Sequence record: KJ019142.1
DNA length: 64,000 nt
Reading direction: 5' to 3' (one strand)
Shown here piece by piece: positions 43,316 through 64,000 of this stretch. Both the position numbers and the translations under genes were made by a program. Under the pieces are notes generated by a model, which saw nothing but the letters and a program-made list of their open reading frames with translations, was not told where the DNA came from and searched no databases. Numbering within the stretch: position 1 is the stretch's first letter; every line of letters starts with the position of its first letter.

Positions 43316-43792
43316 ATGGCAAAGGCTAAATCGGAACACTACGTAAACAATAAAGAGTTGCTAGCAGCACTCATCGATTATCGTGATAGGTTGGATATCG
43401 CAAGAAGAAGAGATTTACCTAAACCACGTATCAGTAACTACGTAGGAGAGTGTTTCCTTAAGATTGCCACTCACCTTTCATACAAACCCAACTTCGTTAA
43501 CTACATGTTCCGTGAGGACATGATCTCGGATGGTATCGAGAACTGCGTACAATACATTCACAACTTTGACCCTAATAAGTCCAGAAACCCCTTTGCTTAC
43601 TTCACTCAGATCATCCACTATGCTTTTCTGCGTAGGATCCAAAGAGAGAAGAGACAACTAGACATCAAGAACAAGATTGTCGAGAAGACTGGTTTTGAGT
43701 CTCTGATGACAAGTGACACTAACTTGACAAACGAGTATAGGAACGACTATAATGCCATCAGGGAAAACATTATTAACAAACTGAACTCATGA
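43316..43792 (+). CDS. g55: Late-transcription sigma factor gp55
   Basis: EHYVNNKELL; YVGECFLKIATHLSYKPNFVNYMFREDMISDGIENC; NPFAYFTQIIHYAFLRRIQREK. Confidence 0.97.
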   Translation: MAKAKSEHYVNNKELLAALIDYRDRLDIARRRDLPKPRISNYVGECFLKIATHLSYKPNFVNYMFREDMISDGIENCVQYIHNFDPNKSRNPFAYFTQIIHYAFLRRIQREKRQLDIKNKIVEKTGFESLMTSDTNLTNEYRNDYNAIRENIINKLNS

Positions 43793-48547: not shown

Positions 48548-48555
48548 ACTGTCCA

Positions 48556-48579
48556 CCCCCACCAGTCATGGGGGTTTTT
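48556..48579 (+). terminator. Terminator-like hairpin
   Basis: CCCCCA-ccagtca-TGGGGG followed by TTTTT. Confidence 0.7.
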
Positions 48580-53159: not shown

Positions 53160-53184
53160 GGGAGGGTAACACCTCCCTTTTTTT
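53160..53184 (+). terminator. Rho-independent terminator after g45
   Basis: GGGAGG-gtaaca-CCTCCC followed by TTTTTTT. Confidence 0.88.
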
Positions 53185-61822: not shown

Positions 61823-62353
61823 ATGAGTGAGTATATCAAACACTATAGGGGAGTTCTAACAGATACATCTTGTGATGTTCTGATAGATGCTCTTCTGAGT
61901 GTAGATAGAAAGCATATAAAGGAACATCGAACAGATCGTAAAACATTTGATCAGGTGTTTCTTAATGCTGCAAATATGGATCTGATTCCAGGTATTACTA
62001 AAATAGTTGGTAATGTAATCAAACAATACAAGATGGATGTTCCATACTTCACACAGTTCTTTCCCAAGGGACTGGAGATTGAAACACCAAAGGTCAAAGG
62101 TTACAGTCCTGGAGGACAATTCAAACCACATTGTGATGTGGATGCTACTTCCTGTCCAAGGTATCTTGCCTTTCTATTTTATCTTAATGATAATTTTACA
62201 GGTGGACAAACAGAGTTCTTACCTGGTATAATGGTGGAACCTGTGAAAGGTTCAGTGGTGGTATTTCCACCCAACTGGCAACACCCTCATTGTGGATTAC
62301 CAGTGGAGACTGGTAACAAATATATTATGTCAACTTATCTAAGATACGTTTAA
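61823..62353 (+). CDS. 2OG-Fe(II) oxygenase
   Basis: FKPHCD, FLFYLND..TGGQTEF, VVFPPNWQHPHCG, KYIMSTY. Confidence 0.88.
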   Translation: MSEYIKHYRGVLTDTSCDVLIDALLSVDRKHIKEHRTDRKTFDQVFLNAANMDLIPGITKIVGNVIKQYKMDVPYFTQFFPKGLEIETPKVKGYSPGGQFKPHCDVDATSCPRYLAFLFYLNDNFTGGQTEFLPGIMVEPVKGSVVVFPPNWQHPHCGLPVETGNKYIMSTYLRYV

Positions 62354-63720
62354 TGGATCGAATTGAGAATTTAATACTAAGATCACTCTCACATAGTGAA
62401 GGGTTTTCTAGGAAGGTTATCCCCTTCATCAAACCAGATTATTTCCATGATAATGCTGAGAAAGTTCTCTTCGAAGAAATCGCACAATACATTGTCAAGT
62501 ACAACTCTAATGTTACTGTACAGGCTCTAAGTATTGAGGTGGAACAGAGAACCGATTTATCTGATAGTGATGTCAAAACTATCAGAACTATCCTAGATGA
62601 CTTTGATGCAGTCACAGGAACTGATGAGTGGATGATTGATTCCACTGAGAAGTGGTGTAAGAAACAGGCAATTTACAACGCTCTTATGGAGTCTGTGAGT
62701 ATTGCCAATGGAGATAGTCAGACTAAGGCTGAAGACGCTATCCCCAGTATCCTCTCAGAGGCTCTGGGTGTATCCTTTGATAGTAATGTAGGTCACGACT
62801 ACATTGAGAACGCAGAGGATAGGTGGGAGTACTACCACCAGAAGGAAGATAAGATTCCCTTCGATATTGATCTACTCAATGCGATTACTAAAGGTGGATT
62901 ACCTAACAAGACACTGAATATCGCACTCGCTGGTACTGGTGTTGGTAAGTCACTCTTTATGTGTCACGTAGCAGCCTCTAGTTTAATGCAGGGTAAGAAT
63001 GTTCTATACATCACTGCTGAGATGGCAGAAGAGAAGATCGCAGAACGTATTGACTCCAACCTACTCAACGTTAATATTAAGGATCTATCTGAACTACCCA
63101 AACAGATGTTTGAGAAGAAGATAGATGCGGTATCTAAGAAGACACAAGGTTCCTTGGTTATCAAGGAGTATCCTACAGCTTCTGCACACTCAGGACACTT
63201 CAAGTCTCTACTTAACGAACTAAAACTCAAGAAGAACTTCACACCAGATATTATCTTTATTGATTATCTCAATATCTGTGCTTCCTCTCGTATCAGAGCT
63301 GGTGCTAACGCTAACTCCTACACACTAGTGAAGAGTATCGCAGAAGAGATTCGTGGTCTAGCGGTAGAGTTCAACGTTCCTATCGTGAGTGCTACTCAGA
63401 CGACTCGTAGTGGGTATGGAAACAGTGACGTGGGTATCACAGATACCTCTGAGTCTTTCGGTCTTCCTGCAACCGCTGACCTTATGATCGCTCTTATCTC
63501 CACAGAGGAGCTAGAAGGTCTAGGTCAAATTATGGTTAAACAACTCAAGAACAGATACAATGATCCCACCATCCACAAGCGTTTTGTTGTCGGTATTGAC
63601 AGAGCTAAGATGCGGTTGTATGACTGTGAGCAGGCGGCTCAGGATGATATTCTGGATAGTGGTGACGACTCTGAGGAAAAGACTTCCCTCAAGGATAAGT
63701 TGGCAAAACTGAGTTTCTAG
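62353..63720 (+). CDS. g41: Replicative helicase gp41
   Basis: LAGTGVGKS; IFIDYLNIC; SIAEEIRGLAVE; SESFGLPATAD; KQLKNRYND. Confidence 0.97.
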   Translation: MDRIENLILRSLSHSEGFSRKVIPFIKPDYFHDNAEKVLFEEIAQYIVKYNSNVTVQALSIEVEQRTDLSDSDVKTIRTILDDFDAVTGTDEWMIDSTEKWCKKQAIYNALMESVSIANGDSQTKAEDAIPSILSEALGVSFDSNVGHDYIENAEDRWEYYHQKEDKIPFDIDLLNAITKGGLPNKTLNIALAGTGVGKSLFMCHVAASSLMQGKNVLYITAEMAEEKIAERIDSNLLNVNIKDLSELPKQMFEKKIDAVSKKTQGSLVIKEYPTASAHSGHFKSLLNELKLKKNFTPDIIFIDYLNICASSRIRAGANANSYTLVKSIAEEIRGLAVEFNVPIVSATQTTRSGYGNSDVGITDTSESFGLPATADLMIALISTEELEGLGQIMVKQLKNRYNDPTIHKRFVVGIDRAKMRLYDCEQAAQDDILDSGDDSEEKTSLKDKLAKLSF

Positions 63721-63728
63721 TGTATAAT
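63700..63728 (+). promoter_or_regulatory. sigma70 promoter TTGGCA-N17-TATAAT
   Basis: -35 at 63700-63705; TG-extended -10 at 63723-63728. Confidence 0.7.
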
Positions 63729-63734
63729 GGTTAT

Positions 63735-63806
63735 GTTGGGAAGAAACCCCAACCTCCTTTGTGATGTGGTGTTTGTTGGGGAAGGGGTGGTTCCCTTCCC
63801 TTTTTT
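63735..63806 (+). ncRNA. Candidate ~70-nt small RNA or attenuator leader (hairpin, linker, terminator)
   Basis: GTTGGG/CCCAAC hairpin, then ACCTCCTTT, then GGGAAGGG/CCCTTCCC with TTTTTT; no ORF inside. Confidence 0.5.
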
Positions 63807-63830
63807 ATTGTTTATTGGTATTCAATTATT

Positions 63831-64000
63831 ATGAGCGTAGATTTTTCTAAGTACGGTGAGTTTGTAGACACAGTAACTAGTGCCCCCTCCAAGGGAACTG
63901 GTGAGATGATCGCAGTACTCAAGGACCTTAAGCTTCGTGGAGCACAACCCGAAAGACTTCTTACTGGTGCAGTTGGTATCTGTGCTGAGGGTGGTGAGTT
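63831..64000 (+). CDS. mazG: MazG-type nucleotide pyrophosphohydrolase, 3'-truncated
   Basis: Hand translation MSVDFSKYGEFVDTVTSAPSK...ERLLTGAVGICAEGGE; usual position after g41. Confidence 0.85.
   Translation, partial: MSVDFSKYGEFVDTVTSAPSKGTGEMIAVLKDLKLRGAQPERLLTGAVGICAEGGE

Follow-up and report, generated by a model that had tools for sequence, protein, structure and literature searches.

The junction between g41 and mazG in a T4-like cyanophage raises the question of whether a short segment with its own promoter and terminator is a gene for a small RNA, a leader of the downstream gene, or simply the boundary between two transcripts. The DNA that we analysed, a stretch of 64,000 nucleotides from sequence record KJ019142.1 (hereafter the window), belongs to Synechococcus phage ACG-2014f, a T4-like cyanophage (Kyanoviridae, Atlauavirus). 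The 601 bases round the small RNA unit are 100% identical to several ACG-2014f records, and GenBank records identical over these bases give the genes on either side as gp41 DNA primase-helicase and MazG pyrophosphatase. The g41 primase-helicase gene, delimited by the ORF list and GenBank annotation, extends on the + strand from 62353 to 63720 (stop codon TAG at 63718-63720), and the 5' part of mazG, cut by the window end, occupies 63831-64000 on the same strand with its ATG at 63831. Genome-wide counts were made in the nearest record, G001 (196,842 nt), which shares 91% of sampled words with the window, is exact over 63001-63900 (900 bases matched), and contains the full mazG followed by three tightly packed, overlapping small ORFs.

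A first-pass annotation of the window proposed that this junction encodes a self-contained early small RNA of about 70 nt that masks ribosome-binding sites of host mRNAs. The conservation pattern and a paralogous promoter-hairpin module, both described below, speak for an early unit of this kind with a predicted length of ~72 nt, whereas the masking of host sites fared badly. Judging from the sequence, our leading reading, to which we assign a probability of about 45%, is a lineage-specific non-coding RNA gene of ~72 nt whose product would probably act in trans via an exposed linker.

Sequence elements at the g41-mazG junction

A sigma-70-type promoter, TTGGCA-17 nt-TATAAT, lies at 63700-63728 on the + strand exactly where it had been annotated, with its -35 hexamer at 63700-63705, its -10 hexamer at 63723-63728 and an overall match of 11/12. 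The -35 hexamer is located inside the last codons of g41 (AAG TTG GCA AAA ...). Promoter matches of at least 11/12 occur five times in the window, both strands included, compared with 1.7 times in shuffles, and a chance origin of one at exactly the g41-mazG junction is unlikely. Because TTGGCA recurs as a regular -35 variant among the ~20 stereotyped early promoters of ACG-2014f phage, the small RNA unit would be transcribed early. The promoter is followed by a 6-nt discriminator (63729-63734, +), which separates the -10 box from the putative transcript start.

At that putative start, the annotated 5' hairpin GUUGGG/CCCAAC is present at 63735-63753 (+), with a 6-bp stem, a 7-nt loop and a predicted energy of -8.1 kcal/mol; with the variants included, the stem measures 6-7 bp and the loop 6-7 nt. 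The segment ACCTCCTTT and the GU-rich linker after it, both also annotated before, are found as described, the former at 63752-63760. The 24-nt linker (63754-63777, +), which consists of CUCCUUU and then a GU-rich tract, is predicted to be mostly unpaired, with an unpaired probability of ~0.9 or more at 16/24 positions and of 0.37-0.87 at the other 8, and is a candidate seed or binding site. Since A63752 and C63753 of the proposed anti-Shine-Dalgarno (anti-SD) sequence pair within the hairpin stem, only CUCCUUU would be single-stranded.

The unit ends at an intrinsic terminator (63778-63807, +) composed of a 10-bp G+C-rich stem with a 4-nt loop (63778-63801) and a T6 run (63802-63807). With six G-C pairs and a stem energy of -17.6 kcal/mol, it bears out the earlier description of a strong terminator and is the strongest terminator-like site found within 24001-64000 of the window. 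Both hallmarks of an intrinsic terminator, a G+C-rich stem-loop and a T-run, are present, and the pairing is kept in five variants. It is also the sole terminator in the genome with an 11/12 promoter ahead and no ORF between. A promoter and a terminator within ~110 nt, with no conserved ORF, form the arrangement of a bacterial-type small RNA gene.

The first-pass annotation had stated that there is no ORF inside the unit. Taken literally this does not stand, as two small ORFs overlap it (63727-63834 and 63761-63850), yet neither is conserved: relatives have lost the ATG or carry indels, located in the loop and in the T-run, that shift the frame. These changes rule out a small peptide product, and the unit is therefore non-coding. 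A replication origin or R-loop at the unit was rejected as well, the cumulative GC skew having no turning point there.

Selective constraint on the unit

Variation was described in an alignment of 13 sequences. Besides the window itself, these were isolates from GenBank (four) and contigs from IMG/VR (two) and from metagenomes (six, with MazG proteins 84-97% identical). Third-codon positions vary at 44/117 in g41 and at 28/56 in mazG, while first and second positions of the two genes together vary at 27/348. The promoter from -35 to -10 is invariant (0/29), including seven third-codon positions, as is the linker (0/24), and few columns change in hairpin 1 (2/20) and in the terminator (3/31). 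In sum, promoter and RNA vary at 5/104 positions versus 72/173 (~42%) of flank third positions (Fisher p = 2e-12), a variability no different from that of first and second codon positions. For the linker, 0/24 has a probability of 2e-6 at the third-position rate and of 0.006 at the all-coding rate. With divergence shallow and the region mosaic, these conservation statistics presuppose a common genealogy of neighbouring sites. The first-pass annotation had named missing conservation of the ACCTCCTTT segment as a refutation; across the 13 sequences, all of one lineage, the entire linker is invariant and not its CUCCU part alone.

The few changes within the RNA leave its structure in place. Specifically, hairpin 1 shows an A-to-G change, by which an A.C mismatch becomes the seventh pair of the stem (G-C), and one loop indel. 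In the terminator, one change converts A-U to G.U and another G.U to G-C, both one-sided, and a third falls in the T-run, so that all 50 terminator pair cells stay paired (five variants, 100%). No double compensatory changes occur within the ACG-2014f lineage; deep covariation is missing because the unit is known from this one phage lineage only. By contrast with the RNA, 4/6 columns of the discriminator are variable. Free variation of the discriminator, flanked by an invariant -10 box and a near-invariant hairpin, is expected of a working promoter with a start near G63735.

This pattern bears on the simplest alternative, an ordinary gene junction at which the terminator ends the g41 transcript, the promoter is weak, fortuitous or just a copy of that of the tRNA operon, the RNA has no function and the conservation reflects a recent recombination block. 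The divergence is indeed shallow, since the majority of the 45 GenBank records with the unit are 100% identical over it, and several sequences are also identical to one another over the initial 170 nt of mazG; moreover, the g41-mazG junction is an insertion hot spot, and the pairing predictions described below give no target signal. Against this, the discriminator is variable while its neighbours in the same block are not, and L110, one of the aligned sequences, carries only one change in the RNA compared with 2-8 differences per 60 nt in its flanks. The preservation of structure by all hairpin changes and the improbability of an 11/12 promoter arising exactly there by chance also weigh against an ordinary junction, which we consider unlikely. 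Taken together, the variation across promoter, linker and hairpin is probably best read as that of a self-contained, early small transcription unit.

Distribution and origin

Among the ~50,000 phage records of INPHARED, blastn finds the unit only in 45 ACG-2014f records, at 97-100% identity. Three pattern scans of IMG/VR recovered only contigs L085 and L092, both of the ACG-2014f lineage; the other pattern matches were coding sequences of the DVVFVG type and not the unit. A MazG-based metagenome scan added six further contigs, again of the same lineage. In all 80 IMG/VR loci with g41 relatives (66-82% amino-acid identity) the unit is absent: in the largest group g41 and mazG abut with a gap of 0-18 nt, and the others hold small ORFs. 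Among the sequences searched, the unit is thus restricted to the ACG-2014f lineage, and because the junctions of related phages are without it, it is an insertion at a variable junction rather than an ancestral feature of cyanomyophages. The search for conservation across g41-mazG intergenic regions, which had been proposed as a check, accordingly has a divided outcome, the unit being kept within ACG-2014f and absent in related phages.

The phage genome contains no second full copy of the unit, and no host homologue was found in three genomes of marine Synechococcus or in the 301 of their family. A host origin was rejected, the only matches being short, due to chance and internal to coding genes, among them that of a DEAD-box helicase.

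A paralogous module in the tRNA/manA RNA operon

Although the full unit has no second copy, its 5' part does have a counterpart. In G001, ~1.1 kb downstream and past the end of the window, a second promoter at G001 126137, TTGACA-17 nt-TATAAT (12/12), overlaps the stop codon of a small ORF, and 6 nt after it comes a second GTTGGG..CCCAAC hairpin of nearly the same sequence. The downstream transcript would carry, in order, this hairpin, a conserved 51-nt element, tRNA-Arg(TCT), a manA RNA (RF01745, 90 bits) and tRNA-Asn(GTT), and since it includes tRNAs and a manA RNA, this operon is certainly non-coding. The same design, with GUUGA-GNRA-UCAAC hairpins, is present in the cyanophages SynMITS9220M01 and S-SCSM2R, so that between these two and ACG-2014f the fifth pair of the operon hairpin shows a compensatory change from A-U to G-C.

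The unit and the tRNA/manA RNA leader share a near-consensus sigma-70 promoter, a 6-nt discriminator and a GUUG...CAAC hairpin at the start. They differ in what follows, as the operon hairpin is succeeded by the structured 51-nt element and tRNAs, whereas in the unit an unstructured linker of 24 nt leads from the hairpin to the terminator. The small RNA unit thus reuses a promoter and leader-hairpin module that the phage employs for stable RNAs.

Comparison with known RNAs

An Rfam scan (cmscan) of 63000-64000 gave no family at threshold. The hairpin-linker-terminator layout that the first-pass annotation likened to the cyanobacterial small RNA Yfr1 is nonetheless real, both against the published Yfr1 descriptor and against the host Yfr1-like loci, whose layout resembles that of the unit. 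Yfr1 is 54-69 nt long (Voss et al. 2007, PMC2190773), and its descriptor comprises a 5' helix of 5-10 bp with a loop of 3-8 nt, 12-20 unpaired nucleotides that include the invariant ACUCCUCACAC, and a 3' hairpin of 6-9 bp with a U tail (PMC2190773). The two RNAs are alike in being small (~72 nt for the unit) and in the sequence of a start stem-loop, an unpaired segment that opens with ..CUCCU behind a stem whose last bases are AC, and a terminator whose G+C-rich hairpin precedes a U tail; the hairpin at 63735-63753 falls within the range for the Yfr1 5' helix. In contrast, the undecanucleotide ACUCCUCACAC is absent from the unit, and CUCCU alone is common; the linker, which reads CUCCUUUGUG..., exceeds 12-20 nt at 24 nt; and the terminator stem of 10 bp is one above the range. 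Furthermore, the Yfr1 Rfam model has no match in 63000-64000 even at E <= 10, and the unit is phage-borne, lies between g41 and mazG and is without a counterpart in ~300 host-family genomes. Because ACUCCUCACAC is absent, the linker is too long and the Rfam model is unmatched, the unit does not belong to Yfr1.

The best Rfam match, below threshold, is DapZ of Salmonella (RF02551; 25.9 bits, E = 0.043), and as 25.9 bits is less than the gathering score of 56, the unit is not a DapZ member. AniS and DapZ both match weakly via the GU-rich tract of the unit, CCUUUGUGAUGUGGU in the case of the DapZ match, and the terminator. What the unit shares with small RNAs of the DapZ type is a promoter that overlaps the end of the upstream CDS, a terminator in common with the upstream mRNA and an exposed, single-stranded GU-rich seed, and the likeness to DapZ is one of composition and architecture only. 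To our knowledge, the canonical Hfq pathway is absent from the host of this phage (see PMC6596454).

Predicted targets and the anti-SD proposal

If the linker is a seed, its partners may be sought among translation start regions. The first-pass annotation proposed that the RNA is a free anti-SD sequence that, in early infection, masks AGGAGG ribosome-binding sites on the mRNAs of the host. In favour of this, CUCCUUU would be exposed directly 3' of the 5' hairpin; ACCUCCU, regarded in that annotation as the anti-SD core, is identical over its 7 nt to the core of the 3' tail of host-type 16S rRNA (...GGAUCACCUCCUAA); Yfr1, with a CUCCU-containing motif, has a similar layout; and among host sites the prediction ranks the SD region of rplV (AAAGGAGG) first and groEL next. 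The identity with the 16S tail holds, but two of the ACCUCCU bases are those held in the hairpin stem. Strong SD sequences are, moreover, rare in a marine Synechococcus genome: of its 2298 crude gene calls, 92 (~4%) have the 5-mer and 33 (1.4%) the 6-mer, while a 4-mer SD-like motif occurs in 16%. In the phage, SD-like 4-mers precede 74/253 genes (29%), and the phage's own genes would therefore be targets too.

The pairing energies argue in the same direction. Against neither the 253 phage start regions nor the 2298 host start regions do the minimum energies of linker pairing leave the range of shuffled linkers, so the suggested target prediction against host genes yields pairing no stronger than that of shuffles. 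The 17 GU-rich nucleotides of the linker are as invariant as CUCCUUU, which SD masking leaves unexplained. On these grounds, the masking of host AGGAGG sites seems very improbable, and the top predicted host sites (rplV, groEL and trkA) serve as leads, not as evidence. Repression of the phage's own early leaders was also considered and rejected: the linker has a 7-bp match to early leaders (UCCUUUG/CAAAGGA), yet its mean energy against 17 stereotyped early leaders is no better than that of shuffles (p = 0.29).

A broader version would make the RNA an early, abundant, trans-acting small RNA modelled on the architecture of the host's Yfr1, with a 16S-like CUCCU seed and the GU tract as an extension, that reprograms translation of a defined group of SD-bearing mRNAs and doubles as the terminator and leader uncoupling mazG from g41; this elaborate form we regard as quite improbable. 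Ribosomal-protein or chaperonin messages, of host or phage, are examples of the mRNAs that it would address.

Predicted terminator read-through and the transcription of mazG

The spacer between the T-run and the mazG ATG (63808-63830, +; 2/23 columns variable) contains no SD sequence, and a sigma-70-type promoter would not fit into it. Because no such promoter fits there, transcription of mazG must cross the terminator. Downstream, mazG and the three overlapping small ORFs run without a promoter up to that of the tRNA operon. Several other terminators of the genome likewise adjoin the next ATG, from which it follows that read-through would be common in this phage genome. With no separate promoter for mazG beyond the terminator, that of the unit may chiefly feed this gene.

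Small parts of the stretch are contained in 19 public runs, and the four RNA-library runs examined consist of assembled contigs, none of which spans 63659-63760. Two contigs, starting at 63761 or 63772, extend past the terminator as far as mazG. As contigs they are uninformative on RNA ends and on strand and possibly derive from DNA; if they represent RNA, they would fit read-through.

These observations are the basis of a second alternative, in which the segment works in cis on the mazG operon as a leader or attenuator. Its promoter would be the early one for mazG and the three small ORFs, its hairpin, linker and terminator would determine the level or the timing of read-through, and the short RNA would be a by-product. 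Besides the missing promoter and the genome's habit of read-through, the arrangement of most relatives, in which g41 and mazG are co-transcribed neighbours, agrees with it. In its attenuator form, CCCCAAC in the 3' arm of hairpin 1 would pair with GUUGGGG at 63775-63781, which overlaps the 5' arm of the terminator, to give an antiterminator. GUUGGGG is found on both sides of CCCCAAC in 4/5 RNA variants, the window variant having GUUGGGA, and the alternative 7-bp helix taken alone is more favourable than hairpin 1 (-9.7 vs -8.1 kcal/mol). However, the best antiterminator structure, at -21.9 kcal/mol, is 3.8 kcal/mol worse than the MFE of -25.7, and hairpin 1 would form first during transcription. 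A ribosome at the g41 stop codon would presumably end a few nucleotides short of the hairpin, no sensing element or factor is known, and an invariant 24-nt linker is superfluous for a plain leaky terminator.

Classical attenuators offer the same mixture of likeness and difference. Like them, the unit has three alternatively pairing segments (GUUGGGG, CCCCAAC and the GUUGGGG of the terminator arm) and is located upstream of a gene without its own promoter; unlike them, it lacks a leader peptide, a fold for ligand binding and any known site for a protein, and its antiterminator state is predicted to be the less stable one. Weighing these points, we consider a purely cis-acting role rather unlikely. 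The small RNA model and the mazG leader model are compatible and do not exclude each other.

A model for the unit and its implications

We propose the following model for the trans-acting small RNA, in which transcription, start site, trans action and any target are what we infer from the elements above. Early in infection, host RNA polymerase would start at the near-consensus sigma-70 promoter, which reaches back with its -35 box into the final g41 codons, and would make a transcript that has its first nucleotide at about G63735 and is stabilised by the 5' hairpin. The invariant 24-nt single-stranded segment, CUCCUUU and the GU-rich tract, would then be exposed, and the small RNA would end at the strong intrinsic terminator. 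The same terminator would stop g41 transcripts as well, with mazG being transcribed by read-through. Most likely, the exposed segment would be the seed of a trans-acting base-pairing RNA, comparable to Yfr1 or to small RNAs made from promoters at the 3' ends of genes.

The description of small RNAs from virulent phages is only starting (PMC12197685; bioRxiv 10.1101/2024.10.31.621285), and a cyanophage genome paper states that little is known about regulatory RNAs in cyanophages (PMC9964418). If the unit proves to be only a leader or terminator, it would be ordinary punctuation of phage transcription. The cyanophage examples known to us are cis-regulatory motifs of Rfam and one antisense RNA. 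If true, a Yfr1-like small RNA would be the first trans-acting regulatory small RNA described for a lytic cyanophage. An independently transcribed, conserved small RNA in this abundant lineage of Synechococcus phages would, if real, provide a tractable case of RNA-level regulation of host or self during marine phage infection, and the unit would illustrate how a new non-coding gene may arise from a duplicated promoter and leader hairpin that slipped into a formerly co-transcribed gene pair.

Variation at and around the g41–mazG junction

Among the 80 IMG/VR loci with g41 relatives whose sequence 3' of g41 was compared (L001-L080), g41 and mazG abut in the largest group. In others, the two genes are separated by a recurrent ORF of ~100 amino acids with the N-terminus NGYYSVFDP.., by different small ORFs or by additional genes spanning 0.9-1.2 kb, and in L037 a 78-nt gap contains TTGACT, 17 nt and TATACT. 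In cyanomyophages, the g41–mazG junction is an insertion hot spot.

The genes on either side of the junction also carry variable patches. Within the ACG-2014f lineage, the acidic C-terminal tail of g41 (window 63651-63699) is hypervariable, with 19 of 52 columns varying and a 3-nt indel, unlike the adjoining last seven g41 codons, which carry the -35 box and are invariant. In mazG, the 60 nt at window 63884-63943 (codons about 18-38) contain 23-25 differences in the metagenome contigs L110 and L111, against 4-13 in neighbouring bins, and this patch looks like a local mosaic or a fast-evolving MazG segment. Additionally, one contig of the oligo-dT marine RNA library run X2 matches window 63761-63949, with 23 unrelated letters preceding 63761; this contig is either a chimera or comes from a relative with different sequence 5' of the terminator and mazG.

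A non-coding RNA operon downstream of the window

In G001, the nearest record of the lineage, a tRNA/manA RNA operon lies at 126100-126570 (L102:6100-6570), about 1.1-1.6 kb past the window end. Its sigma-70 promoter (12/12) overlaps the stop of a 44-aa ORF, and its leader hairpin, GUUGGG..CCCAAC, is followed by a conserved 51-nt element, tRNA-Arg(TCT), a manA RNA (RF01745, 90 bits) and tRNA-Asn(GTT). The 51-nt element, located immediately 5' of the first tRNA (L102:6158-6208; L205:278-328; L206:254-304; L207:251-301), is 94-98% conserved among several cyanomyophages (S-SM2, Bellamy, S-B05, RB11-B and S-SCSM2R), and in SynMITS9220M01 a helix within it bears three compensatory pair changes. The element has no match in Rfam at E <= 1, and it could be either a cyanophage RNA motif that has not been described before or an element for tRNA processing.

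Other promoters and terminators of the phage

About 20 stereotyped early cassettes occupy G001 27,000-56,500, 5' of the window start (G001 61,317). Each is ordered as GTGGCACA, a G/C-rich stem-loop, TGC-TATACT, a CA-rich leader and ATG; the -35 box (TAGGCA, TTGGCA or TAGACA) sits in the loop of the stem-loop, and the leaders (..ACATACCAAAGGAAACC..ATG) are nearly identical across cassettes. These cassettes are reminiscent of the promoter-early-stem-loop cassettes in other T4-type phages. Within the window, a near-consensus sigma-70 site (11/12, extended -10 TG) lies on the plus strand at 62203-62232, inside a 2OG-Fe(II) oxygenase-like ORF and ~120 nt before g41, and two further near-consensus sites (12/12 and 11/12) lie on opposite strands near 43.2-43.8 kb, at 43724-43753 (+) and 43253-43225 (-).

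Several strong terminators (window 48555-48575 and 53160-53177; G001 37613 and 171973) have the next ATG only 0-25 nt downstream, too close to accommodate a promoter, and partial read-through therefore seems to be a regular route to downstream gene expression in the ACG-2014f phage.
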